A DNA stretch of 64,000 nt from assembly GCF_000150275.1 (NCBI RefSeq), contig NW_002060944.1, positions 375,614-439,613 of the forward strand, given 5' to 3'. The notes below the pieces were generated by a model. It had not been told where the DNA came from, ran no database searches, and saw only the letters and a program-made list of their open reading frames with translations. Below are positions 675-51,251 of this stretch, piece after piece (position 1 is the stretch's first letter; each line of letters begins with the position of its first letter). The position numbers and the translations under genes are program-made. The DNA is from Trichoplax adhaerens. Its lineage: Eukaryota > Animalia > Placozoa.

Positions 675-1089
675 ATGCCTCTTGAAGCTCATCTTCATCG
701 AATTGTTTTAAAATATAAAGCTGAATTATTGGACTATTTACCAGGCCGGATATTCTATTCGTGCTTACAACATAAAGATCCAGTATTAAGCTACTTGTGG
801 ATTGAAATTGATCGATCAAAAAGCAATGCCGACACTGGAAAGTCCGCTATAACACAAAATAAAAAAATTCTCGATTCTATTTACAATCAGACTCTAAGTG
901 TTAACGAAATATTAATTAACAAATTGCTCGATGGAACTGAGGATCATTTTGTTCTATTCTATAAAACTTTGCAAGTACAAAATCATTCTATGTTAATCGC
1001 TCTTGGAGAGAAGTTAGAAGCCGAAGCAAAATCTTATTCAACCAAAATTGCTGGCATAATGAACAATCACATTGTTCCAACAAAGCAAG
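675..1089 (+). CDS. First coding exon, CARD-like death-fold domain
   Basis: LHRIVLKYKAELLDYL...NEILINKLLDGTEDHFVLFYKTLQVQNHSMLIALGEKL aligns by eye with the Apaf-1 CARD as I recall it (ARNCLLQHREALEKDI...AAMLIKMILKKDNDSYVSFYNALLHEGYKDLAALL). The ATG directly follows an acceptor (ttccag|ATG). Donor after 1089. Confidence 0.6.
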
Positions 1090-4000
1090 GTAAAACGCGT
1101 ATCTATAAAATGATTTTAAAACCAATTTTCTTATTAGATAGGTCTCAAATCATTTGCCTTATGATTCTGTGAAATAGTTGCTTATTAGAATGATAATTAA
1201 TCAAGAAATATTCAGAGTTAGCTTTACAGAATCATTTAAATTAATATTATAATTAAGGGTTGGTGATTCATGCACACGGTTGATATTTTCTCACAATTTC
1301 AGTTCTGAAAATAAAGTAGTTATGGTATCTGATCACAAGACCAACTATTGAGACTAGAGTCTTTGTCTTATTGTATTTCCCTCAATTTCCGCTGTAAATA
1401 TTTTTATTGAATTTAATATAAAAAAATTAGGGGAATTGTATGATCATTTTTATTTACTAAGGTAAGGTGCTTTATTGAATGCAAAAATATCGATCTAAAT
1501 TATACTCCTGTTACATTAGTCAGGCGATATGACTTAGAAATAGCTTCTTTATATTAGAGTTTTTACTTATATGTATTCTAGAAAATCTGTCCATTCAAAT
1601 TAAAATTGGGATTTGAAGGTTATGATTGCTATCACTCAATACTATTGAAATCCGTTAGCCTATGACAAGAATGAGTTATTTTCTTGCGATTATAGTTTAA
1701 AAAAGTCATTACTTAATCTGATTAAAGATGTGTTTATCTGCAGACAAATTTACGGCACAAAAATCTACATGATTACATGGAAACACTACTCTTATTCGTT
1801 TCGTATCAAATTTTAATGATGGTTATTGTAGTTTAATAGTTTAAATTTGCGTGATTTCTCATTTTTTAAATATTCCAAATTTATGCATCTCAGAAATTGA
1901 TAATATTTATCTGCCGTTACTTTAGACGTTACATCTGCTGTGTTCCTGCTATATTTAGTAGTTTGATATAGAATGTTGGTATTATTAGATAAATTAAATA
2001 CTGTGCACCCATACCGTACGAAAAAAGCTTTTTTCGAACATCAATTTTATATGCAACTTTGGAATTTGCAAGAGTAGAACAATGTTAATACAAGCTGTAT
2101 AAAAGTAGCTTTTTTGCAACATAGTAAGATATTTATTATTTGCTATTACAACTACAAGATGAATAATAATTGTTGCTCTGAAAATATCAGAACTATATTC
2201 ACTTAGTTACAGATCTAGAATTCGCTTGCATTCGCAACATAATTGTTACGATAAATTATTAAAAATGTTTACGCCGTCAATATCAATTTCTAGTTTTTCT
2301 AAAAGTGATATGATGCAAAACGGATGATAGCGTGATACATTGCGGTGCACACTTGATGCTATTGTGGGGAGAAGGGTTAACCCTTCAAACGCATCAGGTG
2401 CATATATTAAATTAAATTGATTAAGTTTAAAATAAATAATGATCAAGCGAGATTACGTGTTTATCGGCATTTGCAGTAAAACTGCCGAACATTCTTGCGA
2501 TCGTTTTTTCTTTATTACGTATCGGAGTGAATTTTTACTGTATTCCATGATTTATAAACCAATATCTGATCAATTAGTTATCTTCTCTCGGTTGAAATGG
2601 CTTTCATAATGCTGTTCCGATCTAATATTAGAAAGCTACTATTTTCATAATAAATGCTAAGGTTATAATCTGTTTCTTGTTAATAGTTATTATTAAGAAT
2701 CTTTGAAATATTCATTGTTGTTTCTTTCAAAGTTAATCAATGCGGTACGGTAAATTGCTATTTCCATAACAATATCTGAAGCATTTTTTATTTTTCTTTT
2801 AAACATAAATAACATACTATTTAAAAATCGTTTATAGCTAGCAAAATTAAGTTATCTTGCATTGAATCAATATGATAATTCTAATACAATAGCGATAAGA
2901 TTTACTCTGCAGTGTTATAAAATATCAATATATACTGGTAACGAGAGCCCATTAGCCGTATTTAAATTTAAAATTTAATTTATTTTAATTACGACTTTAA
3001 CTTTATAACTACTAACTGCTTCAGTTACAGCTGTTCCAAATGTACTTATATCATATCAAAATTTTGTATACTATACTGGCATAATTCTTCTACTAGTAAC
3101 GTTATAGCTATCAAAGTAGTATCTTTAAAAGTAATAGCACATTATGTCTTCTACATTAATAATTTTAATTAGTAGCATCACTTCATTATCTACACAATTC
3201 TCAAGTGTACTTCCATTTCCGTTACTTATAATTCTTGATTATCTTATGGCAAGTAAAATGAGTACATTCAAATAATATCCAATAATAAGGCAATGATAAT
3301 CTAAGTTAATAATTGATAATGCTCGTACTCCAAATTTTGCTGTAATGCCTTCCAAATAATCCTAATATTAGTATATAGCTCTAGCATATAATTTCTAAAT
3401 CAATTTTCATACTCGTACTGTTAGCGTACTAGCCCAAACCCATGCTTTCAGAATACTTGGGAAATCGCAATAACAACTGCATTACGGTACTCTATTCCTA
3501 CCATTACTGGTGTAATTATAGCATAGAATAGGTTTCTAGATTTTACTGTAATTATTTGGAGGTATCCTTGTAATGTGTTTTATTTGCCTTGAGGTTTTAC
3601 TCCGGCGTAACTCTTCTATGAATTTAGTATTTAAACCATCGATTGACAAATTTTAATGGAAAATTAATTTCTGCAGACACGCATTATCATACTAACTGAA
3701 TTTAATGCTTTAACTATTCAATTTTATTACCTTAATATTGTCAGGATTAATCGTTTCTCTTCCAAATCAAACAGTAAGGAAAATCAAAAATAGTAAATCG
3801 AATGGGCAAACTAAAGCAGCATCGCAAATCATCAAATTAGGTAGTGTTACGAGCACTTGCCCATCCTAATCATTCTTTCAATAACTAAAATTAATTCGTT
3901 TATATAACATCTAATACTTGGTAAATGTAACTCTAATTAGTTTAGTCTTTAACTTGTTTCTTAATAAATATAACATCAAGCTCACGTAAAGAAATATAAC

Positions 4001-7000
4001 TTCTTAAAAATAGTTGTTCAAGACCGCTATACACATACAGCTAAAGGCAAATCAAAACTTAATGTAAAGACGGCAGTGAATGCAGATAGTTATTCGCCTG
4101 CTGCCAAAAGTGAAATTATGGCGGGTTGGTATAATAAAATATCCAAACATATAGATAATTTAATGACACTAATCAATAACTTTCAAGTATCATTTTTTCT
4201 ATCGCCACAGACATCATTACGTTAAGAGTACATTGTGAAATTTTTCATGCCGCAAATAATTGTTCCTCACGAGTTTAAGACGGAAAAATCGGCGTTTTGT
4301 TGGTATTGCAGCAAGGACTTATTTCCTTAAAATCTTTTTCAGGTTTGATGGCAAATAAAGCTTACTCTAAAATTCCTTCCCAAGCTGATAGAAGTAACAA
4401 AATGCAAGGTAGCAATAGGAAGTATATGCCTATGGCAATACCAAGATGTAATGGTAATCTTAAGATAGATTTAGAAGCTGACAGCTTTTCTTCTGAATTA
4501 ACTTATGGTATCCTTAGTATCTAACAAATATCTTTAAAAGTGTATCTTTTTGAATTATATTTTTCAATAATTAGAGATTGATTCGAGTTCAACAAGTAAC
4601 AGAAACTGTGGTTACAATTGCAGAAAATCAATCTCGCCCGGCAGCACTCTAGCTGCAACAGGACCGGATACCGATAGACTTATGTATCACAATCCATCTC
4701 TGAAAGCTCATGATTCTAGGCGCTTAGGCAGATAAAAATTTTAAATGAATTGAAATTCATTTGATTTTTTTGCTGGGTAATATTTAAATTAGCCGATAAC
4801 AATTCATTCTGTTTGATATTAGCGGATGGTAAAGTGATGGAAACGTTCCCTGTTCGTTTTTCTGTCTTGCCTCATAGGCAAGTTAACGGCAGATATCCGA
4901 ATTGCAATCAAAAATTTGTTTTAAGAGATTCAAGATTATTAGGTAAAAGCTACATCGCATTTTAAAGCCAAACATAGCGATGCACCATTTACTTACCTCG
5001 GAGTATTAATTTAGGTTCATATAGTCAAGGGGATAGGAAAGCAGCAACACCGAGGTCCAGTTGCTCCGCCGCTTCTCGAGGTAATACTAGGATGATACAC
5101 TATCCTAGACACGTTAGACCATCAGACTCATCAGGTAAGTTTTAATTGTCAAATATTTATATCAACGCCTTATATAGTTTCATATATGCTAAAACTTGCA
5201 AATTCTATTGCTTTTCTAGCTATATCTCTATCAGCTGATAGAAGGGTCGTGCCAAATCCTAAAAATCTTAATACTACATCCTTGGTGAACAAAGGGTTGA
5301 GTAACAACAATAGACAGTTCGACTTTCCCAAAAAATCTAATACTTCGGGTAGAATCAATTCATCGTTTCAAATGAGCTGTAGAAATCACATATATGTTTA
5401 ATTAAGTATACCTTACGAGCCTCTGTCATGTTAATTATAATTTTTAAAAATCAATCTTAACATCAGATGAAAGAATAAATTATCACAAGCGTGGACTTCA
5501 AAGAGAAATAATGCCTAGAGGTTAATTAATAAACTATTAGCTACAGATTCATAGACGACCGTGATTTTGCTAACCGATATCTGCGCTAATTTCTACTCAC
5601 TGGATGATGCTTTGCTAGATCCAAGGCTAAAAGCCAAGAGCAGTACTTATGCAGACTATAATAGTATTCGTCCTCAAAGTTGTCCGACCAAAATGGTAAC
5701 CAGCTCTGCAAATGTTATGGCTTGTAATAATTTGTCTGTTTCTCAATTAACTACGGAGTTGAAGTCTACAGGTAGGTTTCGCCTCTTTTGCAGAATTTAG
5801 TCGGAACCGCATTGCATCTATTTTGATTTTATCGCATGAATTAAATTAAGAACCTGTAACTAAGCTTATTCTGAATTTTGAATAATTTATAAACACAAAT
5901 TTTAACATACGATAGTAGATGGGCGTAATAGAAGTGAAAGTATAGCTTACCGTAATGTTCGAACACGAAATGTACCTACAGGTAAGACTGAAATTTATAA
6001 AGTAATCCATTTTCTTTATTAACGCAAAAACATGGCTTTGAGGAATTCCTTAGAGATGTCATTAGTTTAATAATTAATAAAATTCTAAAATATTTGATCC
6101 GACAGCATTGTCTTTCGCTAATAAAAACATAATTTTACTGATTATTTTAGATCCTCGCATTGCCTTAGGCTACACATCAAGTAATTCCGTTCATCCCAAA
6201 AATACATCAGACTCTAGTAATCCATTCACTGCCAAAAGCGGTAGTTTGATTATCGGTGTTGTTGAGTTGAGATGTCATTGCTAGAAACTTAAAGTGAATT
6301 AATGAGAGTTCACCTTTTATATTATTTGTCTGAGAATTCTAAATTAAAAAATTGCATCTTTACTGTAATGAATTGTGTATGATTGATTTTATTTACAAGC
6401 TGCAGCAGGCAATAATTCCGCTCATCTTGCTAAAACTACAAATACACAAGTTAGCAATATTCAGCCAACCTCTAGATCGAAGCTATGCAGTAAGATGAAG
6501 CAGCATTATACCTAATTACATTCTCTATCCGTGAACTTGATCTTAAATTTACGTCTGTTGATATTTAAGGCAACGATGAAAAGTATAAATTACCGAATTT
6601 AACTAAGGTACAGTTTGACGCTGCAGTTCATGATGATCAAGTGGGAGATCAGAATCAAGAGCCTAAAAAAGAGATTCCAACTAAACTCTCAGGTAATCAT
6701 TTATTAATAAATGATATTTTTCAGTTAACTATTGTAACTAGTTAATTGAATATGGCATCTCTTCTAGATGAAGAGGACTGTTTATATATAAAGACAGTAA
6801 ATCTGGGAATTAATAATAAAATATTTACTGGCAGTCATCATCAAAGTCATAGCACAAAGCTTCATGAATCGACAGGTAAGCTATTATCAATTGCAAGGAT
6901 CAATTATTTTGATTACAGCTATCAAGGGATTGCAAAAATTAAACGATTAAAGGTATCGTAGACCTCTAATTATACTGTATTTAAAATTTATTCATTTATA

Positions 7001-10000
7001 CCATACTATAATCATAGAAGGAAATATCAAAATATTGTTTTACGTTATTAATAATTAATTGGAAATATTACCAATGCCAATTAATGTAAATGGGTAATTC
7101 AAACTAAAAGTGAACGATAGTAAATCGAAATATACTCTAATCAATAATATTGGATTTAAAATATAATTAAACAGTGAATAGCAGTTGGCTAAATTAGTAC
7201 TAATGTTACCTCGATTTGTGTCCTGAAAAATCAAATTTAATCTTAAGTGTATATCTATCTTTACTGTATTCAGGTTATATGGGTTATCAAAGAGAAGATA
7301 TTAATAATAATAAAACACGCATACCCTTTATTAACGATGAAGACTCCATGAGCTTTAATCGTAACTCTAGTAGTCGACAATATAGGAATGATTTGCGATC
7401 GGCAAGTATAGGTAATGTATGACGCTATAATCACAGTTATGGTATGCTTTCGGTTTGTTATTTAAGCCCATTTGTTTCGATTTGAATTCATATGTAGCAA
7501 AGGCAAACCAAGAATGTAACCAAATCAAAGTCGATGCACTATCTGCTAAATCCTCTGAAAGTAAACTACTTCAACGGCGTTCAGAAATTAGTCCAATTTC
7601 ATATTTAATCATATATCAATAAGATATTTATAACGCTACTTTCCTTCAAATCTTACTTAGCCGATGTGACTCAAGATTGTAACGACAGAGCAGCCAGTAA
7701 GCTATCTTCTGAAAATACGCCAATCTTGGCTGAGAATGATAAAATATCTGATATTCATCATAGTGGTATGACCTGTATGATATTAAATAAAATAGAATTA
7801 GGCGTTACCAAATTTGCTTTTCCTCAATTTCAATCGATAAATAGCGAATGAAACAGATCATGAAAATCGATTAACCTCAGACCAGCAATCATTGAATAGT
7901 AAACTCTCATCGGTGTCGGAAAATAACCAATCAAATCTACAGCTCAGAGGTATAACATAGATTATTATCAATATTGGAGTTCTTAATAAATCATACTGAT
8001 CATTTCAATAATTGATTGTATCACTTTTTCGCTTATTTTCTAATGTACATGTGCTAATTTAGATCTCTGCTTTGCAAAAGCGGAAATATGTAGTGAAATT
8101 ACTAATCCTATCGTATCAGGTAGTAACTTCTCTGAGATCTGAAATTAGAATTATATCCCTTGGCAGTAATGAAAATAGCTCTACAAGATTATTTGATGAT
8201 TGATTACTTTATCGAATCAGATATCGCACTTATTCAACAATTAGGGTTTCACATCATCTTAATTGCCAGTCTAAGAAAATATAAGATTAAATACTAATGC
8301 TTAGTACTGTAAATTAATAAAGCCGGCTAAATATAGTAGTCTATATTTTAAAATGTGTAATACCCTACGGACTGAATTAGGAAGCAACAAATCTGAATTG
8401 AAAATCGATACTTTGGATAATAAGCAGGAAAATAATTCGGGTAAGAATTTATGAATCCTCTAAGAGTAGATCCATTCATTAATTAAGACTCTGCCACAAA
8501 ATGATTTCTAAAGGAGACAAGAATTTACGGAAAAAAGTGATTTTACCACTAAAGCAGCTGCGTTTTGGTGATAAAGGAGATAATTCAAGTCAGTTTCTAA
8601 TTATCTCCTAAGAGCTATACTTTTTTTTGCCTGATTTATGGAACTATGGAGTTTATTTGTATTTCAGTTCACAGCGATTGCCAAATACTCCAAAATGTAG
8701 ACAAGTCTTACAGATCTGAGCATCAGTCTCAAAATTCCTTGTCAATTATCAAATGTTCAGGTAGCTACGATCAAGACTCTACAAATAATGAAGTCGAAAT
8801 ACAGCAAGATAGAGATGACGGAACTTCTTCACTTACTGGTATATTCTTATGTATCAAAATGGATCAGTCCTGCAATTATATAACTGGATGCAATGAAAAC
8901 ATTTATCTTTTCTTAATAGTTCCAAGTTCAAACGACCAGGGTGAAAACATAACTAGTGAGCCATCTCGTCCGGTGTTCGAAAAATCGGAGCTTTCAGATG
9001 CAGCTGCAATAGGTAGATATCGAGTTATTTAATATTTTCGACAAATGTCTACCTTTTACTGATTTATAAAATCACGAATTTACTTGGAATGGAGTCTTGA
9101 CAACGTAGCAAATTCACACACACTGTATAGTACTGTGTTTATGGAATAATGGATTTAGTTGAAATTCCCCCGATAATTTTACATTTCGTTGTAATAACTA
9201 CTATATATCATAGATCAGAAGATTTTTAATGCGAAACAAATTGAAATTGTGTAATTGTAACCTACATGTATGATGTCCTACTCATTTTAAGCAAAAAGCT
9301 AATTAACTTACCGGTAACTTTTAAATAATAATACAGAGGGTATGGAGGAAAAACTTGAAAAGGAGGGCCAAGTATTAGGTAAATAATCGACGAAATTAAT
9401 ACCCTGGTATAATAAAGTCTTATCCGTTCTTTCCTGATTTCCTTGTAATTGGCTATTTTAAACTTTAATAAATCCTTTAGGAATTACGAATACGTCGGAA
9501 AAGTCTGTAATCCTGGAGGATAGGCTAGAAATTTCAGGTAATGCACAGCAGTCGGTAGCATTCGTTTCTTACTGTATATGCTTATTAATTTTTTATTATA
9601 TCGATTAATATAAACAAAAAAATATCAACTACTCTATATTATTAGATAATACTATAATGGATGCAGTTCGGAGTGAAATGGGCAAATCTGATAATTCTTT
9701 CAAGGCTGAAAATAAATTAGGGGTTACAGGTAATGTTTAAGCAATTGCCGGTGCAAATATAACTTTAGTAATTTTGCCATAATTAAGGTATAGAAATTTT
9801 TGTCTATGTGATAGTAGAAAATGAATCTCAAGAATATTTAGCTAGAAAAACTGATATCACAAGCCTTTAGTAAATCTAGTTATCTAATTAATGATTTACA
9901 AAATTGTGCTAGTTACTATCACAATGATTTACGAAATTGTTAATTTCATTAAATTTAAAGTGATTACTAACTAATTTATCGGTTTAATGTTGACAATTAA

Positions 10001-13000
10001 TTTTGAATGTTAGAAGAAGAGAATCATGATCAGCATATAGACAATAAAAAAGTTCAAAGCGAAGGTAATAAGTGAAGAAAATCATGGTAACGAACCGTTG
10101 TTAGACAAAATAAGAGCGGAATATTCTCCTATGATTATATTTATTGATCTAATCCTATTGATTTAACGATGGAATAAGAGTCTGAAGACAGATTCTAGAT
10201 ATTAAAAATATTTAATATCCTAGTGGTAAACTAAATGTTATTGTAATTATTTCATTGAGCCCAACGTAACTTAACGACGATACTTTCATAAATACAGGTA
10301 TAGATCAGATAGAGATGCGAACATCCAACAATTCTTGTGATGCTTATCATGGACCAAACATTACAGGTTATACCCTGATTATTATCGTTTTATTCGCTTT
10401 TGGATAATTTCTTCACTATCAAAATATCTTATGCCTCTTTGAATTATAAAAAATGAATTTCAAGAGTCTGGTCTCAGGGAAAAGAATAACGAAGAATTTA
10501 AATTAACAGATGAATTTGGATGCTCAGGTACAGTACAGTACGATTATATGTACATGAATTCCGAGCATACAACCACTTTTTAACTTAAAATATACTAACG
10601 TTAACATTAAAACAGAAAGTGAAATGGATGTTGTGAATGCAAAGGGTACTCAAAGTAAAGGAATCTCAAAATTGTATGAGATCTTGCTAAATTTCAATTT
10701 AATTTAGCGTTATTACTCTGCTTTATTTCTAGAAATAACGCAAGAGAACAGCCGCGCTGGTAAAATGAACAGATATGTTCTAGGAAAGGGTAAATTAGAT
10801 CAAAAGTGTTTTCTTTCAAAATGAAATCTACTAGTCTCAGTACACCATGCTAAAAGACATCTAGCTTATATTAAAGTTTAAATTACGGGAATTATTTTAC
10901 GGTAATTCTAAGATACGATACCTGATGGTAGTGAAACCAGCAGAAAAGATTTACTTAGCATAAGGCAAGATAACTCAAGGAAAAAGACATATTCTGGTAG
11001 GTCCTATCAGGCATTTCAGAGCAAAACAAAGTGGTATGGTATTACTTTTAATATTTAATTAGAATCTAATATAACTACTGTAGAGCCCTAAAATATAACG
11101 GTATCGCAAAAGATACGATCATGGAAGTTTATAAGCTGTTCGATCTTCAGATTAGGAAATAAGCTTTAGCAACATTATTTACTACTAGGTCTTCAGATTA
11201 GCAAATAAGTTATGGCTACGATAATTACGATTAGATCTTTGAATAAGTAAAAAGTTTTAGCTATATTAGTTGAATTGAAAGCTTTCATTACCATCAGATA
11301 TCAAGTATATCTGAAATCGGGCTCATTGATAATGTAGCCTTCTGCTATAACAATAGTAGGGCATGAAGATCGTATTACCAGTACAATATTAGAAGAGAAA
11401 AGAATAGAAATAGAAACTTCTACCGAAACTGTCATTAATGATATTAAAATTATCAGTAAGTTGTGTTAGAATATACGTTCGCATGCTCAAAGTCAATTAT
11501 AAAACATACTGCTTCTAACAAACTAGAGAAAGAACCTGAAGATTTAAATTCAAAATTTACGAAAAACGAAAGCTTAAGAATAGAATTAAATATAAATAAT
11601 TCTACATCTTCTAGTAAGTCGAAAACAAATATGACTGTAAGCATAACTAAAAATCACAGCATCTTCCTGCCAGCGAATAAAATTTGTATAAATTTATTCT
11701 TAAATATTCTGAATTATTCTTAAAATCAGCTGCGAGTAACGAACTTGAGCTTAAAATTAGCAATAAACCTAAATGGAATGGTAATTAGCTCAAATAATGC
11801 ACAAGTTTGCCCTAAGATTCCGTTGAAAAGAATCACTTCTCATATAATTCTAGATTTTTGTTCAAATAATCAAACCTTTTCCAAATTAGATAAGCATGAA
11901 CGAGATGACATTATTGAATCTGGAAATAACAGTATAATAGGACAGATTTATAATAATATTTCAATTGATGTTAAATATTTGAAGTTAGAATGCTATACCG
12001 TATGCAAAATATTGATATAATTTTAAATAACGGCTTCATATTTTTTATAACCCATAATATCAGAACTAGTGATTAAGTCATTCATCATTTAGCCCGTAGT
12101 GGGTGATGTTACCAAATTTTCATCTTACTTCACGTAGTAGATAAAATTTCTAATGGATCTCTAGCATTTAGCTTGTTTTATCGATTTAATACAGAACAAA
12201 AGTATGCTTCACCAACTGCAAATGCACAAAAATTACCTAAACAAGAAGAAAATTTATACGAAAGACAGAGTGATCGCGATGAATCCCCAATACATCCAAA
12301 TATCGCAAATTCTGGTGAAGTCTTAGAATTTAATGATGTGCATATGCTCAAAAAATTAATTCATATGTTTGTCAACTCTATTTGATATTTAGATATTCAA
12401 TATACCAATATGAAATGTCCTGCATTAGGTAAAAATGAAGCTAATCACGTTATTCGCATAGGTTTTGCTGCAATATATCAGTTCGATAAAACAAATGTTA
12501 ATGAAGAGTAATCGATTTAATAGATACATTTACTGGATGTATTTCGGTAGCAGAAATGTCTAGCAAAGACTGTAACAGCTGCAATATAGGTATAAAAGCT
12601 CTATTTTGAATATTTATTAATTTTAATACATCAATTTGAAACATGAATTAGGCCAGGTCATTAACCTTCTTACAAAATTTCAAATTATCACTGTTTTGCC
12701 TTTTCAATAATTTACTTTATAAATGTTTTTCTCAAGTGCTTCGTTCCAGATCTCTAGTAAGTCGAAATTCTGGAACTTTGGTTGTCATTAAAAAGTCAAG
12801 AAAAATCGCCATAGCTTTAGACAACTCAAGAATGATTATAGGCCTACAAAACTATGGTACGATATACATCTAATTCAATATATTGATCTATAAAGAATAC
12901 TTGGACGTATCTAATGCAAAGTTAGATTAGTTGATAACAGTTTTGTTCATGTGAAAAGTATTTAGTTATAGTGATATAATTAGTGAAATTATCTGTTATT

Positions 13001-19000: not shown

Positions 19001-22000
19001 TACTGATACAAGTCCAAGTAAGCATACATGCAATAAGCAGGAAAGCATGATGCATTCGCGTAAAGGTATTATCATACGAGCCGCGTTAGGAAACATAAAA
19101 ATGTTACAGAATATTATAACTAAGTATATATTTGATAGAAATCTAGGGGCTAACTATTAATAAATTCTATCATTATCACAAATATTTGGAACAAATAGTG
19201 AAATTAAACGATCAACATGATACGATAAGTGCAAGCTGTTTGTTTAATCTTAAACACGAAGAAAGTCGGACGCCTTTACCTGCTAGTATGATTGCTTGTA
19301 TATATATATAATTATGAAGAAAACTACTAATTGTAGAGATTTGAATAAACCATAGATCGAAATCATTCGCTATTTTATTATATCATTTAACGAGCTGCTA
19401 ATTGCATTTATAAATGATAGATTACTTAAGTCAGGAAGAAGAATTGAAAGAAAATTTTTATCCACAAAGGAAATCGAAGGACCTAAATCATAAGACAAAC
19501 AGTAAAGATGCCAACGATTCTAAAGGCAAGAAGCAATTCGACTATCAAGTATTTTTAACCCGGTTTCTAATAATAATTTGCAAAAAATATGACGAGTGAG
19601 CTATAGTCAGATGGCTTCAATTTTGGATAGTGTAAAATTAATTATTTTACCGGCATACATCACTAGATTCTAACTTACTTTGAATTTAACCTTTTAAGAG
19701 CTTTACTATGACAACGTAACGTGCCTATCACTGTTTTTATTAATGAAATTTAACTACTCGATGCAGTATTTACGTGTAATTAGAAGCAACGATTGGGTTT
19801 GGAAGTTATGCGATGTTTTAAAAGTGATTTATACGAGATACTGCATCAAATGGAACTATACTTGAAGCTTAAATTCGTTCGGCATTGAAGATATTGCCTA
19901 ATGAAACAAAGAAAAGTTTTAAACAATAACTTTATACCCTTATTGATTAACTCGTGATGTTAACCAAATTGTCCATGTAACTTCAAAATTGTTATTAAAG
20001 TTATTTACGGATTTGATAGATTATCCATATTTTTCGACGATTTCCTGTCAGAATGGAAGTCAAAGTGCAGTAAAAGTTTACGATACACAGCCTAAAGCGC
20101 TTGATTCCAAGAACTCCGAAAAGGAAAGTGCTAATACATCTTATGGCGGAGGTATAGCGAATGGGATAATCTCTAATTGATGGCAGCTATTATTTTCAAT
20201 AAAATCAGCCGTGTGCAAGTGCTATAACGGGATTTCATTTGGCCAAATTGTATTATCTTTAATTAGTAATTATAAGACGTAGAACTTGTTGATTTACTCT
20301 GCATAGTTAGCGTTAGTAATTGCACTGGATAAATTATTTAATATTAGGAAATTTAGTATTATTACAGTACTTACTAGACAAGCTCGATATATTTAAGTCT
20401 TAACTGCCTTGAATCAAGCTAAATCTGGACAAATCTTGAATGACAGTTTATCTAGGATAAATATGGATGTTTGTTAATATTTTCGAATTACTACACTGCT
20501 ATTATTATATGTAGTAAAAGAATACATTTAATTTATCTAAATATATACCTGGAATATTTAGGTACTCCCTCATTACCATCATCAATCCGAGCGGTTAAAT
20601 CTGGAATACCAAAACCAGCAAGTTTGTTTTGTTCTGTGAAAAGATTCTATTCTACTAAATTTAAACATGTTTGTTTGCTTTTGAAACTTCACTCATTCAA
20701 TGTTCACAAAATTTATCAAATATTTACCTAACAGATTTCAACAAAAATCATGAAGTACTCTCTAATAATAAAGGTAAAGTAATGAAGTAGCTACTGCTTC
20801 CAGTTGTCGATAAAATGAGTAGACAATGTTCATGTTACATAGGAAAATTTTATCTCAAACCTACTCAATGTTTCGTAGAAGATTTGATTTTAAAAATACT
20901 TAACATCACTATTAGATGTAGATATATGCTCTTTATTGCACATTATGAGTTATAATATTAGAGTGGTAAAAATAAGCAAAAGTGGATCAACATTCACTTT
21001 TAGTGTTTCGAAGTCACAAAATCTAAATCTACATGCTATTTATTTGATAAGCTGCGGCAGTAGAAGTGATAAAGGATTACCGGCAGCAATTAGTTCCGGC
21101 ATTTAATGAAAGCAACAAAGATCAAACCAAAACCCAACAGCCTCAAAGTAGTGTCATTATTAAAAAAATTTAGATGTGTTACATCATTATTTTTAGAAAG
21201 TCAATACTGTTTTCACCTAACTTTTAACGATAGAAATCATAGTTCATCGTCCAAGGCCGATTTTGAAGCGCAGCAGAAGTGATCCTGTCGAAGATTCTGA
21301 TGCAATGCTAATCAACGGTACTATTCCAGCGCTAAAGCGTGATAAACGCGATAACTGGTCTGAAGATAATAGTAAACTTCTAAGTAAGCTGCACGTTTAA
21401 TCATTTATCAGGGGATTAAATAATTTCGACCAAAACATTTGTTTACTTATGCTTGTAATTATTAGCGGGCGATGCTGCAATAGTAAGCGAAAATAACCGG
21501 ATCAAGTCTAAGTCAAGAGGTAAAGAATTTTGTAATCTGGCATGACAGATTCTACTGTAGTTCTACAGATTGTCGTCAGATAAAACCATTATTAGTGATG
21601 AATAAGCTTTTACAGATTTAGTACGAGCAACTAAAAAGCTATATTAGAAAAGTTCTTGGCAGATACATTGTGCTTATTGAATAATAGAAGTTTAACATTT
21701 GCTAATGCGGTGCTGATAAAAAGATTTACGTAGGCTTAAATTAAGGAACTTAAACTAGTTGCTAGATTATTACACTGTTACTATCAATCGTTTGAGAACA
21801 TCCTTTTATTCATAGAAATTAATTAATTTGCTTTACGGTTAAAACATACCAAGGTAATGAAAATCTGTTGCTTACGGCCTAAATTGTCCATGTTACAGAT
21901 GTTAAAGTTGAAAAAGTCTGGTCACTAGCTGAAAAAAATTCTGTTTCCAATTACCAGGAGTTCTTGAAAACAGAAGGAAACGATATTGGAAAATTTTCAG

Positions 22001-25000
22001 GTCGAGGTCAATATTTTACTGAAATAACGATTTCAACACCTTTCTGTCACTGCTTTATATGGCATTGCAGTAAAATTAAAATAGTTGATGTTTGGATTTT
22101 ATAGGAGATACAACAACGTGGAGTAAGCTTGGTCGATTGGACAATACATTAAGAATGAGATTGATTCAACTGAGTGTATTCAAGTCTTCAGCTAATATTC
22201 CAGTCAGTTTGATTAGTATCCTGTGGCAAGAACATCCTTCGGTTGTGAGAAATGAAATTATGATAATGGAGAGGTATCATTTCGTTAAATACTACTGGGA
22301 AGATGGGAGGTGAGAAAGCGATGGCCAACAAATCTAGACGAAATTGCTTTGTATCTTCCATATTGTAAATGTAGAGTTACGATCAGAAAATACTAAGTTG
22401 GATTGTATCTGCTTACAGTATTATTAAAGCATTAGAAAACTGCCACTTTTAAATGAGAGGAATGTTCTAAATGCACTTACTGCCTTTTAAATGGCAGAAA
22501 ATATTCTAAATGTACTTACTGCATTACCAAATGTACGCTTTATTTTATTTTAAACGATACTTCATGTTAAAATAATTGTATATAACAATTAACTTACTAC
22601 AGAAAAAGTAATCGTGATTGATTCAAAGTTGACCGTTTGCTTTTTAGTATCTGATAGCAATCATAATTTAATGTATAGAATAGATCTGTAATTCTACTTT
22701 GATAAACTATTGATATGACTTTATATAGAGAATTTTGCAAAATTGATGCGGCTATAGTCGATGATCTTCGAGAGCTCCATCCGAACCCTAGCTACTCAAA
22801 TGAACTTTTAATTAATCGTTGTCAATTACGATTTGGTCGAGACTTGCGCATCATGGAAGACGATGGATATATGTACCAGCATATTATTGAACATGCTCTT
22901 ACAGCGAAGAAATCGTCTATCGCTATTCATTTATTGAATGATATTAAATGGATTTCTGCCAAGATTAAAGCTTGTGGAAATATTATGACATTACTAAAGG
23001 ACTATGCAAAGTGTGAAGAACAACTAGATTATATGGTAATTCTAAAATCTTTTACAAATATGTGACAGCACTAGTTGCTTTTCGAGTAGAAGAAACTGAA
23101 TCGCATTCATAGCAGTATCTAAACGAACGCTTGCTCATTATTATGCAACAGAAATCCATTGCTAATAGAGGCCAAATATTTACTTAAAATTTATAAAATT
23201 CAAGTAGTGATTTTAAAATTTCTGAATTTAAATATCGGTATGAAACTTAATATCTAAGCAGCACATAACTCTTTCTTTGTTACATAAATCCATTACTTCT
23301 TCGTAGTTTATTTGCTTTAATTAAGACATAAATTTTAATCAGTCGTCCCATCTAACAGAATTAATAACAGCACCTTAATGCTTGTCAGTACACTATTGCA
23401 CGGAGCGCAGACTAACTAATGAACTTTAAACCAACAAGCAAGTTTGATTATACTAATAGTTAATTATGGAGTATAAAAGTAAATAGTTAGTTCCTCCCGG
23501 CACCTAATGATTCTGATAGTACACTTATTCTATAATTTAAAATACTTCTATTTATTTCAGCAATGGCTAGAATTGCGTGATTTATGCCTTTTCTTCCGTC
23601 GACATGGTGCGTTTGTAAATGCTGCAAGTACGAACTTGATTCAATTCGTGCTTAATCATACCAGCGATGGTGCAACTCATAAAAGGGCAATAAAGGCTGC
23701 TTTAGAGTGTAAACGTGAAAATCATACATTATATTATTACCAATTAATGTAAGCTAATGTAGTGATGGATCTATCTAGAATTATTATCATGAAATTCACA
23801 GTTAAAATAGAATAATGCTTATACGATGGAAGTTATAACCTAATCTTTCATGTTAACATGATTCATTTTAAAGAGGGCGTGACTTTGAAAGGATCAATCC
23901 TGTTTGGCTGCAGTGCTTAGCACTACCAACTACACTTCAGGGCATGTCTATACATTTAAGATGCTCTAATCCTACACACACCAAATTTAGAGTTGCTCTA
24001 AGTGATGAAAGACAAACGAGAGTAAGTTTAATATTTTGATTTTTAATGATAATATGAATCACTTGTGAATGGTGCCGACGTTTATTCCAATTTTAATAAT
24101 CCTAAAAAATCTTCCATTAGGTTGTAGATTTTAATACGTTTCTTGAAAAATTTAAAACTGACTTAACTTGCCCCAGTAAAATATCTCCAAATGGTCAAAT
24201 TGTTGCCTTTGTAAGTGTAATCATTTTAGCTGTTCCGCTTATTTATGCATAAATATGTTAAGAGCAGCAAGTAAACCTCATAATTTTATATCCATTCATG
24301 TTTGCAAACTTTATTACATTTAATGTAATTGCAGCTCAGCTATGTTGTTTTAAAGATTTCTTTTATATATGTAAGTTTGCTCGTGAAATATACGTCAAGA
24401 TCTCATTTGCGTATCAGCAAAGCAAAACTTCAAAAATTGATTGACAAGATCTTACCTGAAACACATAGCTACATCTACAAACATTTAATTGCATATAACG
24501 GAAAATAGAATTGGCGATGAAGTACCTTATATTCCATGATTAGTATTTTAATAATTGCTTTTTTAAACATAGATGGATTCTACTTTTTCCTGGCAAGCTT
24601 GGCATATCGACAGAAAGCGCAATATACCATTTGTAATTAATGGGAAAGGAACAAACTCTTTGCATTGTTCCGAACTAGAATTTTCACCTGCACAGCAAAT
24701 TTCTCTGGTGTGCTGGATGAACCTGCATGTGGAAGTTAGTATTGAACGTCATCATAATTGATTCTAAGCGATATTTATATCGCCAAATGGGTAGAAAACT
24801 GTAGCTTTGCTAATATCAGAATAGAGACTGATATTGCCATTCCGTATTGCTGTATCCGTTATATTATTAACTTATAACTTATTATCCCAGTTTGTATCGA
24901 TGGAGATCATTTCATCTAGATATCGTTAGCATAAATGCAAAATAATTGTTACTAACATTCGTTCCTTGCACTCTTCTTTTTTATACAAGGTATGGTGTCT

Positions 25001-28000
25001 AAATGGTGATAAATTTCATTTGCGACAGAAATGGAATCCACACGCTCACGATATACAATTTTGCCAGTTTCATGAAAATGGGACTAAATTAGTTACTTAT
25101 AGCATCATTGGTCAGTCTTATCAGCCTATTAATAATCCTCGTTACATTTGTCCCACAGTTTCTAAAGCGGGATGGCAAATAGAACTTAAAGTATGGAAAA
25201 TTTTATAGTTGTTGCTGATTAGCATTAATATCTTTATAAAGTGTGCCATATAAGCTTCTATTAATTTGAGAAAGGCCAAAGCCATTTATTTTATTTGTTA
25301 ATATTGAAATTAAAATTAAATGAAAAATTAATTCAACCAGACAATCGAAAAATTAAAATGACATTTATAACGTATATGAATGAAGTGGTTGGCAGTGCTC
25401 ATTTTACATGTTACACATATTATATAATTTACCGCTAGCGCTTTCATAAGATATTTCTTTTCAGTTTCTATACTCTTATTTTAGAAGTTTCCTTGCTTTA
25501 ATGTGCTTAATTTGCCAAATATTAATTACCGTGCAATTGCAATAGGCTTGGCAGTTAGAATCATTCAAGCAAATTGATTGCTTGGAATTTCATTTTGCAC
25601 GACGCAAATCTCGTGATCAAGGATGGCCTACTATTACTTTTCAGCTTCAATGTGTTAAGTACATTACAAAGCAATTAGCTGTTGTTGATATCGGTAAATC
25701 TGTTGATCAACATTGCTATCATTGTATAAGCTTGCTTAAGCATTCTTATAAGCAAGCGATTTCATTAAAGAAGAAACTATCTACCAATTACCAATCCAAG
25801 CTACTAGATGAATTAGTAAACTTGCATGTTTCTGACGATACTCTTTTCCTCCTTGGTGTGCGATATCGGGAAATTCTAGTGAGTTTTTTTTAATTTATGT
25901 GACATTAAAAAATACTAGAAAGTTGTCTAATTAGTCTATTTGAATGTAGTAAATCGAATTTAATAGGAATCTACTCAATAATTATAATCTATAATAGAAA
26001 CCTAAGTAGGTTAAATTTTAAGATATCTTAATTCCATCACTATAGTACTACAACTTCAATCTACATTTTGAATATTTTTTACCTGTTAAATTTACCACAT
26101 TTCTTTTACAGCTTTATACCCGCCACGATAACACTATTTCTAGGTACCGTCAATTAAAACTCGATGTCGATCCCATAAAAAATAGTGTGCAATTCGTGAC
26201 TGGAGGAAACGAATTTGTTTATGCGGACGCCAATAAAAGAATTTATCTTATTGCTGCCGAAGAAACACCTTCGTCCTATCCATGTAGTCCGATCAACAGC
26301 CAAATCAAGCGGTCACATGGTAGTACTTTACAGTCTGAAAGTTGTGCATTTATAAATAGTTCTGTCACTTTCTGTAGCATTATTAAGAACAAAGAACAAA
26401 CAATCCTACAGGTGAGATGATAATTCTGAGATAGTGGTAAGGAGTCATGATGATTTAACAAAATCTTTCTTGCCTTCTCGGAATAGATCTATAAAGGAGA
26501 GCCATTGCAACTAAGTTGTCAAGCAGAAATTACAGCTCAGCAAAACTTACATAAAAATCTACATTGTTACTTATTTGACGAGTGGTTTTATATTATCGTT
26601 TCTTACGAACTCCGATGTGAAAGTAAATCATGCTCTGCAAGTATAGACACAGTTCATGCACATTTTTATATCATTGTAAGTTACATAAAATGCCGTAATT
26701 CTTGCTACCAGCTGTTGATAGTTAACGTTTAAAACATAGATAATCAAATTACCCATTGTTGGCTATGTAATTATAGATTCTTATACCTAAATAGTAGCTG
26801 TTCTTAACTAAACTTTATTTGCTATGATATAAGTATACCATCAACGCTCATCCACTCCTATTTCAGGCTAAACACTTAGATAACATTAAAGATAATGTAT
26901 GGACGGCCAGAAATCGACTACCTGTTAAAGAATTACCAACTTTAGGGAGATGTAAATATCGGATAAGTGATAACAAGCTGATAGTTCTTCGATCGACCCA
27001 TACTACGGTAAATTAAAGCTCTACATTAGTAATTGGTCTAGCACCATTAGTTTCAATAAATGCTACTATACCAGTGTTATTACCGATAGGTGGTGCATTC
27101 TGCCAATTGTAGTAATAATTTCTTTCACTGAATAATTATAATCAATCACGACAAGCTCGAAATTGTTGCAAAGCAACATAATGTATGTAATTTCATATTC
27201 TAATTAGGAAAAACAACTAAACTTCTACTAGCTAGTTTGTCGATATTTGAATGCTAATAATCTAGAATTAAAAGATTAAGTTTACAAAATTGAAAATTCT
27301 ATAAATAATATAAGTGTATTCCTAACCTGAAACGTGTAAAATATTGAACTATCTTTTCAAATTATAGTACATGTTTGTATGGCTGATCGACTGCTGTAAA
27401 GGAGAGACAATAGCAACTTATTTACTAAATAATTTTACTGCGTCAAGAATTATTTATTTTACTAATCAGTATATTGTTGCATATGCAAACTTGAACACTA
27501 CGTTTACGGTAAGCCATATGGTCTATCGACTGGCCAATTTTTAAGCTTCAATAAACGACTCTAACATATAGTTTCATTCGGAATTAATTACGCAGGTGTG
27601 GAAAATAGATGACAAATCTATCCAGTTGTTAGATAAACTTCATAAATATCCTTGCCATGAAAGCAAATTATCATACGGCAAATTAAATATAAAGGGTTTG
27701 GAATCTTCCTTAGATTGTGTACGATTATCTGAGCGCGCGCATACCGAACATTTTGGAAATTGGCACCTAGATATAAGGAGAAATGTTAGGTTTCAACATT
27801 TATTTGAAAATTTTAAGCCTACAGCTTAAAAATTTCTTAATCTAAAATCTATGTTTTGCATAAATTATGTAGGAATTTGATAATACAATAGAAATTTGTC
27901 GAGTACAAAATTGCAATCGGCAATTAATTCAAGTAGTTAATCAGAAGAATGGCCATTTTTTATTCTTCATAAGAAATGGATACGAATTTTCGGTAAGTTA

Positions 28001-28649
28001 CATTTGCGTAGGATTTAACTCAACTCTTTACGCTTATATACGTATTTTAGTTTAGGAAAGTAGCTATTTTTCTTGTTACAACTGATACATATTTTAAATA
28101 CAACCGAAAAAATCTAGAGTTACTTGGTAATTTATTTGTAATAGACTTTTATTTTAGCAGTCGCTAGTAATCTTACATTGTAACAATGCAATTTTATTAC
28201 ATTGAATAATTGAGTTATCATGTAAATCAACTGAAATTATGCTATGTAAGGACTTTTGCTAATTTCTAGCATCGAAATATTAGTAAAATTGACGCAATTA
28301 TCTTCACTAGATGTTTGATATGGGTCCTAGTCTGGCTTTAAAAATATTCTATGGCCAATTCTGCTATCCTACTGTACCTATATCGGAGTCGAGTATCGCA
28401 TGGTGCAATAACGAAAGGTACCTAGCCGTTTATAATTACCATGGTTTGCAACTCTATGATATACATCAGGAGACCTGGTGCTATGCCATTGAAACGGATT
28501 ACGTTAAAAAATATGCGAGAAATAGTAAAGACACTCCAAACTCTGATTATATTTACCTCAAGTTGAGCGATAGAAACATTCTAATGTGTAGTCAATCGAG
28601 AAATTGCTACTTTATTAAGCTCATTTATTTTCATCAACGCAGATTTTGA
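675..28649 (+). CDS. Giant Apaf-1-like protein, about 80 exons and roughly 3,400 aa: CARD-like / long low-complexity insert / winged helix / helical domain HD2 / degenerate WD40. No P-loop NBD is visible.
   Basis: Manual splice reconstruction. Exon 675-1089 ends in phase 1 (CAAG|gtaaaa). About 65 open AG...G/A|GT exons of 3n length follow, from 3745-3840 to 21899-22000. They join in phase 1 to exon 22105-22309, and phase-consistent exons continue to TGA at 28647-28649. AATAAA lies at 28787-28792. That this is a single transcript is inferred from phase continuity. Confidence 0.65.
3745..22000 (+). CDS. Array of about 65 symmetric phase-1 exons encoding a S/N/K/D/E-rich, probably disordered region; includes one 1188-nt exon (15014-16201)
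   Basis: Open 3n exons translated by hand include 3745-3840 (96 nt), 4014-4124 (111), 4823-4942 (120), 5015-5134 (120), 5619-5771 (153), 6151-6240 (90), 9337-9378 (42), 12737-12856 (120), 14053-14202 (150), 14508-14669 (162), 16320-16460 (141), 21234-21383 (150) and 21899-22000 (102). All have canonical acceptors and phase-1 donors. Confidence 0.75.
11144..11281. repeat. Intronic degenerate minisatellite, 46-bp period, about 3 copies
   Basis: Units start at 11144 (tcttcagattaggaaataagcttt), 11190 (tcttcagattagcaaataagttat) and 11236 (tctttgaataagtaaaaagtttt). Confidence 0.7.
22105..23748 (+). CDS. Apaf-1-type winged-helix and helical (HD2/APAF1_C-like) domains; exons 22105-22309, 22729-23035, 23561-23748
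   Basis: LSVFKSSANIPVSLISILWQEHPSVVRNEI resembles the Apaf-1 WHD (LSILQKDVKVPTKVLCILWD). DDGYMYQHIIEHA...LLNDIKWISAKIKACGNIMTLLKDY resembles Apaf-1 HD2 (YWYNFLAYHM...LDWIKAKTELVGPAHLIHEF). FFRRHGAFV...NLIQFVL resembles FLSLNGHLL...NIVQLGL. Exon phases (2, 0, 2) are consistent. Confidence 0.8.
22447..22523. repeat. Intronic tandem duplication of about 38-39 bp
   Basis: ttttaaatgagaggaatgttctaaatgcacttactgcc is followed by ttttaaatggcagaaaatattctaaatgtacttactgca. Confidence 0.7.
23874..28649 (+). CDS. Degenerate WD40/beta-propeller region, about 12 exons and about 750 aa
   Basis: Motifs ISPNGQIVAF, LEFSPAQQISLVCW, HAHDIQFCQFHENGTKLVTYS and IAWCNNERYLAVYNYHGLQLYD. Phase-0 introns fall before VW/AW/LY/IY strands. 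The region sits after HD2, as in Apaf-1. Confidence 0.65.
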
Positions 28650-38193: not shown

Positions 38194-39501
38194 CTATACG
38201 TCTATTGAAATACTAAAATCTTCGCTATTTACTGCCTTACTATCGAGCAGTTTAGAGCGAAAATAGACAGCTCTCTGTAATATTTTACGGGCTTCTATAT
38301 ATTTTCCTTGCATTATGTGTATTGCGGCAATTTTTTTACAACTAGTAATAACAGATGAGTGATTTTCTGAATATATATTTGTTCGCGATTCCATGCTTTT
38401 TTTATAAAAATAAATTGCTTGATCATATTGACCTTGATGATAATAAACATTAGCAATATTTTCCTGGGTGATAACAACATATAAGCTTATTTCTCCTAAA
38501 ATTTGTACTTGAATAATTAGACATTTATTGTACATTGATAAAGCTTCTTTATATCTTTGTTGATGGAGGAATATACAACCAATATTATTATATGAAGTAG
38601 CAACATCTAAATTGTGGTCACCAAGTATCTCTTGTTGAATATTAAGTGATTTCTGATACATTAAAAGAGCGCCTCCATACTTACACTGACTGTCATATAT
38701 CCCACCAATGTTATTGTATGATATAGCTATATCGAGATTACTCTCTTCCAATGTTTGTCGCTGAATAGAAAGAGATTTCTGATACATAGCCAGTGCTTTA
38801 TCGAATTGAAATTGTCGATAATAGATACATCCGAAATTGTTATATGAATTAGCAATACTCAAGCTATTATCGCCGAAAATTTTTCTTTGAATTGTAGCAC
38901 ATTTCTGCAGCATTTCTATAGCATAATCGTATTGGTATTGGTGATAGTAAATCAGTCCAATATTATTGTAAGATATAGCAACATCTAAATGATCTATTCC
39001 TGGTAATTTAAGTCGAATGTGAAGAGATTTTCGATACATGGATAATGCTTCTTCAAATTGAGACATACGAGAGAGAACATAACCAATCTCGTGATAAATA
39101 TTAGCAACTTTCTGTTTTTTTGCTTTTGGTATTAGATCCAAACATTTCCTGTAATCATCTAACGCTTCTTTATACAATTCTTTCCTAGTCTTAATAAGTC
39201 CTTGATTATAGAAGCATTGAGCGAGACTTGATAAATCTTTCATTTTTTCAGCTATTTTTTGTGATTGAAAACAATTTGCTAAGGCCAATTCAAAACGAAA
39301 TTCTTCTCTAAAAGTAATGGAAATATCCAGATAAATATGAAATCGAAGTGGATTGTTTCTCCGATTAGTCAAACATTTAGTTAGATCCAAAGCTTGATTA
39401 AAACATTCCCGGGCTTGCTGATAATTTTTCTTGTGATAGGCCCGTTTACCAGCCTTTCGTAAGGTCTGAGCTTGCGAAAATAGAGTCTGTTGATTACCCA
39501 T
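38194..39501 (-). CDS. Intronless TPR-repeat protein (42-aa KLC/nephrocystin-3-type repeats), 435 aa
   Basis: Uninterrupted ORF with about 9-10 repeats of the A.SYNNIG.IY..Q..Y..AL.MYQKSL.IQ...LG type at 42-aa spacing. N-terminus is MGNQQT. Confidence 0.92.
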   Translation of the reverse strand: MGNQQTLFSQAQTLRKAGKRAYHKKNYQQARECFNQALDLTKCLTNRRNNPLRFHIYLDISITFREEFRFELALANCFQSQKIAEKMKDLSSLAQCFYNQGLIKTRKELYKEALDDYRKCLDLIPKAKKQKVANIYHEIGYVLSRMSQFEEALSMYRKSLHIRLKLPGIDHLDVAISYNNIGLIYYHQYQYDYAIEMLQKCATIQRKIFGDNSLSIANSYNNFGCIYYRQFQFDKALAMYQKSLSIQRQTLEESNLDIAISYNNIGGIYDSQCKYGGALLMYQKSLNIQQEILGDHNLDVATSYNNIGCIFLHQQRYKEALSMYNKCLIIQVQILGEISLYVVITQENIANVYYHQGQYDQAIYFYKKSMESRTNIYSENHSSVITSCKKIAAIHIMQGKYIEARKILQRAVYFRSKLLDSKAVNSEDFSISIDV

Positions 39502-51118: not shown

Positions 51119-51179
51119 GATTGAAAAAATGAATTTGCCTCAACTTGAAGGTAGGCAACTTCTTCGCCAGCAAGATGGG

Positions 51180-51197: not shown

Positions 51198-51251
51198 CTA
51201 GTGCGGAGCCTCGTTGTAGAGTAGTGGTCACTACTGCGCATACTCTTGAAA

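Follow-up and report, generated by a model that had tools for sequence, protein, structure and literature searches.

A stretch of 64,000 nucleotides from the placozoan Trichoplax adhaerens (the window: positions 375,614 to 439,613 of contig NW_002060944.1 in assembly GCF_000150275.1, here C1413:375614-439613) carries on its forward strand what we read, at a probability of roughly 0.7, as a single long transcribed protein-coding gene of the placozoan Apaf-1-like expansion, whose ATPase was lost in the ancestor of a trio of related genes and whose linker grew later. Apaf-1-type scaffolds are defined by a nucleotide switch. Along the window gene a CARD-like exon 1 is followed by 50-65 small polar exons, an exon for the winged-helix domain (WHD), exons for helical domain 2 (HD2) and repeat exons, without the P-loop nucleotide-binding domain (NBD) and helical domain 1 (HD1) that would form the switch. 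A sequence-only reading of this DNA had described such an Apaf-1-like protein and had the ATPase replaced by a disordered insert of ~2,300 amino acids (aa); much of that description is supported by the analysis below, and the idea of a replacement is not. The parts of the gene, with the evidence that places them (HMM, hidden Markov model), are as follows.

675..1089, forward strand: CARD-like exon 1 with the initiator ATG, a six-helix domain with a loop insertion of ~25 residues.
3745..3840, forward strand: exon 2, the first phase-1 insert exon; the 1089>3745 splice is found in the gene model of Trichoplax sp. H2 and in the exon chain.
3745..22000, forward strand: the insert, ~50-65 small exons, mostly phase 1-1, plus one exon of 1.2 kb; exon-chain models.
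14627..14669, forward strand: RHIM-like motif IFNQAGIQIGSQY in predicted exon 14508-14669; read from the sequence.
15014..16201, forward strand: largest insert exon (open frame 15019-16242, 408 aa); open frame and chain model.
21234..22000, forward strand: final three insert exons, 21234-21383, 21466-21519 and 21899-22000; RNA junctions as predicted.
22105..22309, forward strand: WHD exon; Pfam, paralog HMM and RNA junctions on both sides.
22729..23035, forward strand: HD2 exon 1 (APAF1_C), 307 nt, phase 2; Pfam and RNA junctions.
23561..24210, forward strand: HD2 exon 2 (23561-23748), then exons 23874-24021 and 24121-24210; RNA junctions and paralog homology.
24573..28649, forward strand: C-terminal repeat region of ~600 aa in ~8 predicted exons; chain model and paralog HMM links.

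The window is AT-rich (~30% GC) and free of assembly gaps, and an open exon chain of ~3,000-3,250 codons can be built along its forward strand from 675 to ~28.6 kb. The chain was obtained with a self-written, splice-aware finder that combines GT/AG sites, open frames, codon log-odds and an intron penalty; left unconstrained, it runs from the ATG at 675 to ~28.6-29.4 kb through 68 exons and 3,250 aa with a score of 373.5, compared with 29.5 (587 aa) for the minus strand and ~21 (~500 aa) for shuffles, and its length far exceeds chance expectation. The 3' end may lie at 28649 or one exon further on, near 29402-29450. The Apaf-1 order of CARD-like head, insert, WHD, HD2 and repeats is recovered as the sequence-only reading had it, in a chain whose score of 373.5 stands against ~20-30 in the controls, and so is the run of phase-compatible insert exons: 37 of 66 internal exons of the unconstrained chain are phase 1-1, and a chain forced to phase 1-1 over 3745-22006 (50 exons, 2,042 aa) scores nearly the same. 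The very long polar stretch between head and WHD is equally present, but the earlier figure of ~2,300 aa for it falls to 2,042 aa in the all-phase-1 chain; exon number and length are model-dependent, and the insert is best given as ~2,000-2,300 aa. For comparison with families and structures the exons were searched one by one, and they were joined only for checks of frame, composition and substitution.

Spliced RNA joins the insert to the Apaf-1-like part. Assembled contigs of one low-depth run (X5), laid over 18500-24400, show ten GT..AG junctions, among them 21147>21234, 21383>21466, 21519>21899, 22000>22105, 22309>22729, 23035>23561, 23748>23874 and 24021>24121. The junction 22000>22105 is the in-frame splice of exon 21899-22000 into the WHD exon that had been predicted from the letters, and one 438-nt contig covering 21902-21998, 22103-22307 and 22727-22862 runs from the final insert exon through the whole WHD exon to the start of HD2. 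Together the eight RNA-supported exons of 21234-24210 make up 414 stop-free codons, in frame across the junction between insert and WHD, and a further junction, 24210>24573, is inferred from the loose end of an RNA contig and continues in frame.

The absence of the ATPase, put forward in the sequence-only reading as a lack of Walker A, Walker B and HD1, is borne out by Pfam, by a motif scan and by family models built for the purpose from this genome. Six-frame Pfam scans of the whole 105.6-Mb assembly (1,414 contigs) gave 68 NB-ARC exon matches and 49 APAF1_C matches, a large Apaf-1-like expansion in agreement with an earlier survey of placozoan genes (PMC6321704). NB-ARC (PF00931), which had been named as a check on the claim, has no match at E<=1 in the window, nor anywhere on scaffold C1413. 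No Walker A motif occurs in the forward frames upstream of the WHD; the only near-match, AFRILGKS at 3444, was rejected, as a stop follows two codons later. HMMs were made from the paralogs for exon a (P-loop), exon b (Walker B) and exon c (HD1 plus WHD, ~150 aa), and were run over paralog loci of which several cover one side of HD2 only. Models a and b reach E-values of 1e-25 to 1e-35 at the other paralog loci examined and return noise in the window (best E 0.55), with nothing in the window, in L025 or in L026, the two sister genes described below. Model c aligns over positions 1-144 at all other loci (E 1e-37 to 1e-60), and in the window over 91-143 of 145 (E 1.5e-7); within the trio of window gene, L025 and L026 its coverage is confined to positions 89-144. 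The window WHD exon thus corresponds to the 3' half only of the ancestral HD1+WHD exon. Because the family HMMs succeed at every other paralog locus examined, the absence of NBD and HD1 is not a problem of sensitivity.

What lies downstream of the gap is recognisably Apaf-1-like. The WHD exon matches Dark_WHD (E 9.6e-5) and APAF-1-like_WHD (E 0.01) in Pfam, both below the curated cutoff, and the HD2 exon, within the open frame 22715-23062, matches APAF1_C (PF17908) with 30.5 bits, above the cutoff of 22.8; the match was recovered in the genome scan at C1413:398439-398645. A homolog search among proteins with the HD2 exon returned none within the permitted range of lengths. With the paralog HMM match already given (E 1.5e-7), the identities proposed earlier for the WHD and HD2 exons stand. 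In the paralog alignment an Asp (KID, at 22745-22747) occupies the place of the sensor His of the LHD motif, a position that we take to be that of the LHD of Apaf-1, whose His contacts the bound nucleotide. The region of HD2 exon 2 (23483-23749) has homologous exons in 17 paralog pieces as well as in L025 and L026, and iterated HMM searches link exons 24573-24758, 24930-25205 and 26487-26729 to C-terminal exons of several NB-ARC-bearing paralogs. The nature of these repeats is less firmly placed. Pfam WD40 matches neither the C-terminal exons of the window nor the homologous exons of the paralogs; of two profiles compared with the PDB, A5, from the group of the 24930 exon, gave weak matches of which five of six were WD-repeat proteins (best E 0.059), and A6 gave nothing. 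The alignment of the exons has the rhythm of a WD-type blade ('IW.I.G ... C.F..NG.K.L.W'), and the ~600 aa of the region come close to the size of the Apaf-1 propellers. That the repeats are degenerate WD40-type blades is therefore plausible but not established; the earlier claim of WD40-like exons has the weak WD-repeat matches in the PDB in its favour, and no support from Pfam.

Two further genes of scaffold C1413, L025 and L026, come closest to the WHD, HD2 and following exons of the window gene, and they suggest an order of events. L025:1952-9589 corresponds to ~310-317.6 kb of C1413 (~310-318 kb), and L026:5390-9352 to ~251.4-255.4 kb (~251-256 kb). Both hold APAF1_C (43 and 37 bits), weak WHD matches and, in upstream exons, weak CARD matches; by the paralog HMMs, both are missing exon a, exon b and that half of exon c which codes for HD1. 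In L026 ~280 nt separate the CARD-like exon from the exon that holds the WHD, which leaves no room for an ATPase and none for a giant linker. In L025 the distance from CARD to WHD is ~4.5 kb, and its phase-1 WHD exon of 208 nt is immediately preceded by a predicted phase 1-1 exon of 96 nt, a layout that parallels the window exons of 102 and 205 nt. A 307-nt phase-2 HD2 exon is common to the three genes, which group together in the HD2 tree (support 92/88), beside a branch with canonical Apaf-1. All three have Asp at the sensor position (KID in the window, KLD and NID in the others), where 9 of 11 NB-ARC paralogs have [LI]-H-[DENS]. Two NB-ARC-bearing paralogs, at L024:7403-7729 and L027:7856-8224, have Asn for the sensor His (LND, INN), and the P-loop exon match of L024 contains a TAG; these two may be further members drifting from nucleotide control.

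The ATPase was most likely lost first, in a single ancient event in the ancestor of the trio, and the linker would have grown later in the window gene alone; the loss is placed before the insert because L025 and L026 also lack NBD and HD1, group with the window gene and share the change from His to Asp. The view that the insert replaced the ATPase has accordingly to be given up, since the sisters lack the same two domains and L026 has almost no linker. As a course of events, the trio ancestor would have lost the P-loop NBD and HD1 and kept a CARD-type head, WHD, HD2 and C-terminal repeats; the sensor His of the WHD would have turned to Asp once the nucleotide pocket was gone; and the linker from CARD to WHD would then have expanded to ~2,000-2,300 polar residues in the window gene only. 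The three genes are ~30% identical to one another and have kept open frames and exon sizes, which speaks for selection having preserved the form without ATPase.

Exon 1 is, in our estimate, probably a CARD-type domain. It is identical (100%) to the first 138 aa of TrispH2_004199, a gene model of Trichoplax sp. H2, and a 54%-identical homolog with the same start, in which two conserved blocks flank a variable loop, is found on metagenome contigs. Two such contigs of ~1.3 kb each, from ENA (L038 and L039), hold this homolog; at a guess they are placozoan-like DNA. Aligned with hhalign against the CARD exons of NB-ARC paralogs, a set that includes a member above the Pfam CARD cutoff (L021), exon 1 gave a probability of 68% and E 4.8e-5 over its C-terminal half. 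An AlphaFold 2 model made with a seven-row multiple sequence alignment (MSA) has a mean predicted local distance difference test score (pLDDT) of 72.6 and is a six-helix bundle with the first helix split. In an exhaustive structural search this model ranked the CARDs of Apaf-1/caspase-9, Apaf-1, Dark and CED-4 on top (Z 12.0-10.5, root-mean-square deviation 2.5-3.9 Å), nearly all of the 50 rows being death-fold domains, and Foldseek gave the same ranking at weak E-values (0.28-1.3). Other comparisons contributed little: the single-sequence model was unusable (pLDDT 43), BLASTP with the CARDs of paralogs gave weak matches (best E 0.007 among five sequences, E 0.35 against L026), look-alikes in the ESM Atlas were uninformative, and phmmer of single exons against PDB sequences found nothing significant. 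No second copy of exon 1 was found in the genome, and iterated local HMM searches of the paralog loci examined gave no paralog of it.

The insert is polar and probably disordered to judge from its composition, with 12% Ser and 7-9% each of Lys, Asn, Asp and Glu, hydropathy of -0.5 to -1.2 compared with -0.2 to -0.5 in the terminal domains, and no internal repeats found in it. The 408-aa exon has no homolog among 1.84 billion representative proteins and no second copy in the genome; its lone library match, to a bacterial Ig-repeat protein, was judged spurious. Iterated local HMM searches of the paralog loci with the open frames of the insert gave two matches only, partly or wholly intronic and read as repeats. 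A 37-aa open piece in intron 1 (1444-1554) strongly matches L036:466-600 on the minus strand and weakly L034, and is probably a dispersed repeat. An open-frame piece in the region of 19356-19490 and 19680-19935 resembles L029:5956-6081, minus strand (E 7.5e-5); over these two stretches the RNA and DNA contigs have loose ends, several base differences and 57x depth, far above the surroundings, and the sequence there could belong to a repeated element, or else to another transcript within an intron. Comparison with Trichoplax sp. H2, which covers 675-13849, found the first 13.8 kb of the window 98.85% identical to NOWV01000031.1. Divergence is 0.48% in predicted exons and 0.96% in the remainder (p 0.003), all 11 indels fall outside exons (p 0.03), and the ratio of non-synonymous to synonymous rates (dN/dS) is ~0.6, from 12 non-synonymous and 5 synonymous changes, so that the insert is under weak purifying selection, as a disordered region would be. 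Within it, IFNQAGIQIGSQY has an IQIG core like that of a RIP homotypic interaction motif (RHIM), flanked by N and G where a RHIM would have them; protein shuffles contain the core tetrad in 6% of cases, G plus core in 0.17% and N..G plus core in 0.015%, and Pfam gives no match to the motif.

Several points weigh against reading the locus as one such gene. The RNA consists of low-depth assembled contigs of one run over 6 kb only, blind to isoforms and alternative starts, and among the contigs over 18500-24400 no single molecule joins exon 1 to the WHD. The chain finder matched exactly only 5 of the 10 RNA junctions, and exon borders upstream of 18.5 kb are provisional because it reproduces half of them. 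At the head, Pfam CARD has no match to exon 1 even at E<=10, the predicted fold is not independent evidence because the MSA includes paralog CARDs, and helical bundles can reach Z ~13 by chance; the claim of a CARD-like exon has the support of profile-profile comparison (E 4.8e-5) and of an MSA-guided CARD fold, and not that of Pfam. At the other end, the WD40 identity of the repeats is suggestive only. The clade support of 92/88 is moderate, not decisive, and the L025 and L026 genes are known from genomic sequence alone. The dN/dS of ~0.6 is based on 17 substitutions only, and H2 has a nonsense change (CGA>TGA at 11901) in a predicted 78-nt phase 1-1 cassette exon, 11854-11931, which is either mispredicted or skipped or dispensable in H2.

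Some of these points would suit a locus made up of at least two transcription units, with a gene for a CARD-like head plus polar protein upstream of a separate, short WHD-HD2-repeat gene, and with the splice from insert to WHD a minor read-through or chimeric isoform. Besides the shallow RNA, from one run over 6 kb and without a whole-gene molecule, the annotation of H2 speaks for it, which divides the first 13 kb among four or more genes on one strand, of 179, 207, 791 and 161+ aa, none with a Pfam domain. The H2 model TrispH2_004199 begins at the same Met as the exon chain and makes the identical 1089>3745 splice, then runs into the intron past 3840 and stops. As it ends only by reading through the donor at 3840, the fragmentation looks like a failure of gene finding, which had been anticipated for this locus. 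Such an arrangement is also hard to reconcile with an insert-to-WHD junction that is in frame within 414 stop-free codons over eight RNA-supported exons, with a WHD exon that begins in phase 1 and whose open frame lacks an ATG start (TTG), and with the matching arrangement in a sister, L025, where a predicted phase 1-1 exon of 96 nt leads into a 208-nt WHD exon that also begins in phase 1; we hold it unlikely. Somewhat more doubtful still is a relic, in which a decaying, drifting Apaf-1-like paralog without ATPase carries an insert of exonised junk. The family has ~50 copies, some with stops, homologs of the insert are found nowhere, the dN/dS is ~0.6, H2 has its nonsense change in one predicted exon, and the window gene sits on a long branch of the HD2 tree (1.14), all of which a relic would accommodate. 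It would not be expected to hold ~3,000 open codons over ~60 exons (controls reach ~500-590 codons), nor exons that diverge at half the intron rate and avoid indels; frames remain open and exon sizes equal in three paralogs that are ~30% identical, a distant homolog shares 54% of the N-terminal domain and differs mostly in a single loop, and splicing is accurate.

An ATPase that is present but overlooked, too divergent or lying in an unrecognised exon, is extremely improbable. A domain that has diverged strongly or is divided into small pieces may escape a profile scan in six frames, and the exon models before 18.5 kb are rough; on the other side, Pfam, the motif scan and the family HMMs all fail in the window, the HMMs succeed elsewhere, the RNA chain 21147>21234>21383>21466>21519>21899>22000>22105 holds polar sequence only, the HD1 half is gone from the WHD exon and the sensor His with it, and the assembly is gap-free. 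A different use of the insert, favoured in the sequence-only reading, which gave a decoy as the alternative, has also to be weighed, as a prion-like or condensate sensor in which a ligand at the repeats would trigger assembly through the insert, by amyloid templating at IQIG or by phase separation, and so cluster the CARDs. The motif IFNQAGIQIGSQY, with a chance of 0.015-0.17% in shuffles, has a likeness to the core of the RIPK1/RIPK3 RHIM, and a long polar region fits disorder. Short amyloid motifs, some RHIM-related, serve for signalling in fungal and bacterial NLRs (PMC5485727, PMC7885112, bioRxiv 10.1101/2020.01.06.895854). The motif of the window is, however, a lone, short one, picked out post hoc among ~2,000 residues without a Pfam match; its exon, 14508-14669, lies outside the RNA-covered stretch; and no partner is known, an orthologue of RIPK1/2 not having been found in Trichoplax sp. 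H2 (PMC6321704). Since sisters without the insert are also without the ATPase, the insert is not needed to explain a life without NBD, and such a sensor seems improbable; the same low standing belongs to the wider proposal of an animal Apaf-1 descendant that would have swapped ring assembly for assembly via a giant disordered linker bearing a RHIM-like core. Were it true, the gene would be an animal counterpart of the amyloid signalling of fungal and bacterial NLRs, and its ~50-65 frame-neutral cassette exons would let splicing tune the tether length or include or exclude the motif.

In Apaf-1 the arm formed by WHD and HD2 packs against the NBD. For a single ATPase-less gene, which we prefer, the absence of NBD and HD1 should mean that the protein cannot bind nucleotide, switch by ADP/ATP exchange or form an NBD ring. 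What it retains is a head for homotypic interaction, this arm and the repeats, putatively ligand-binding. Granted that reading, the most likely role, at a little less than even odds, is that of an adaptor or regulator in CARD signalling that has no switch and builds no apoptosome ring by itself. Through the repeats, HD2 and WHD it would engage a ligand or a paralog that has the NBD, and the CARD, at the end of a long and flexible tether, would draw in or sequester caspases or adaptors with CARDs of their own, as scaffold or decoy. Skipping of linker exons, which are mostly phase 1-1, would alter the length of the tether with the frame intact.

Set beside Apaf-1, Dark and CED-4, the window gene has a CARD-like N-terminus, WHD, HD2 (APAF1_C) and a C-terminal repeat region of ~600 aa in the same order, with an exon layout from the WHD onwards that NB-ARC-bearing placozoan paralogs have too, and differs in lacking the P-loop NBD and HD1, in the Asp for the sensor His and in its polar linker of ~2,000-2,300 residues; having neither NTPase nor HD1, it falls outside the NB-ARC family by the feature that defines it, and could at most do the work of one part of Apaf-1. 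In Trichoplax sp. H2, 39 NB-ARC genes were described, their heads CARD or death-like and their tails WD40 or TPR (Kamm et al. 2019; PMC6321704). The window gene arose within this placozoan expansion; it groups with the branch of the canonical copy in the HD2 tree and has C-terminal exons in common with several members, whereas the C1413 trio lacks NB-ARC and the window gene adds the giant linker; as that survey selected genes by NACHT or NB-ARC, the trio lay outside its search (PMC6321704). Chlorophytes have APAF1_C/WD40 proteins without NB-ARC, such as UM033_0004 of Ulva mutabilis, for which a scaffold function via the repeats has been proposed (PMC8891106). There too APAF1_C and repeats persist after loss of NB-ARC (PMC8891106), but these proteins have no CARD and many also lack a WH-like domain, whereas the window gene keeps a CARD-like head and WHD and adds a linker. 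The resemblance is one of parallel, independent loss in another kingdom, not of membership in the green-algal clade, because the window gene nests within placozoan paralogs on the HD2 tree. With the amyloid motifs of NLRs and the RHIM of metazoans the window gene has in common a short motif of the G-I-Q-I-G type N-terminal to an NLR- or Apaf-like region (PMC5485727, PMC7885112, bioRxiv 10.1101/2020.01.06.895854, PMC9444067). Fungal and bacterial motifs stand at the extreme N-terminus, with the NTPase kept and a matched partner gene, whereas that of the window, known from sequence alone, lies deep inside a linker, in a protein without NTPase and without a known partner. A literature search, which was not exhaustive, found no report of an animal Apaf-1 member with head, WHD, HD2 and sensor region but without the ATPase.

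On its 5' side the gene is bounded in H2 by a gene for a 274-aa 7tm_1 G-protein-coupled receptor on the same strand, ~2 kb from exon 1 (L037:7149-7973). Elsewhere in the window, 38194-39501 on the minus strand is an open reading frame (ORF) of 435 aa made of TPR-like repeats (units of the form 'A.SYNNIG.IY...Y..A') with a weak tBLASTn link (E 6.7e-5) to the C-terminus of the NB-ARC ORF of 1,079 aa in L001, and may be related to the NB-ARC-TPR family while having TPRs alone. Two further minus-strand ORFs lie at 46553-46954 (133 aa) and 44967-45608 (213 aa), the former, by eye, a putative MADF/Myb-SANT-like DNA-binding domain. The sole GC-richer stretch of the window is 50001-52000, with a GC of 0.41 against ~0.30 elsewhere.

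Placozoan annotations at present break a gene of ~28 kb and ~60 exons into unrelated 'hypothetical proteins', and domain surveys that select by NB-ARC overlook members of this kind. The trio, which probably sits beside ~40 ATPase-bearing paralogs, forms a natural series for asking what a linker adds, short in L026, with CARD and WHD exons ~4.5 kb apart in L025, and giant in the window gene. Conservation of such a trio without the ATPase would mean that the WHD-HD2-repeat module is useful in itself, perhaps as a regulator, decoy or adaptor in the cell-death or immune signalling of an animal that ranks among the simplest.

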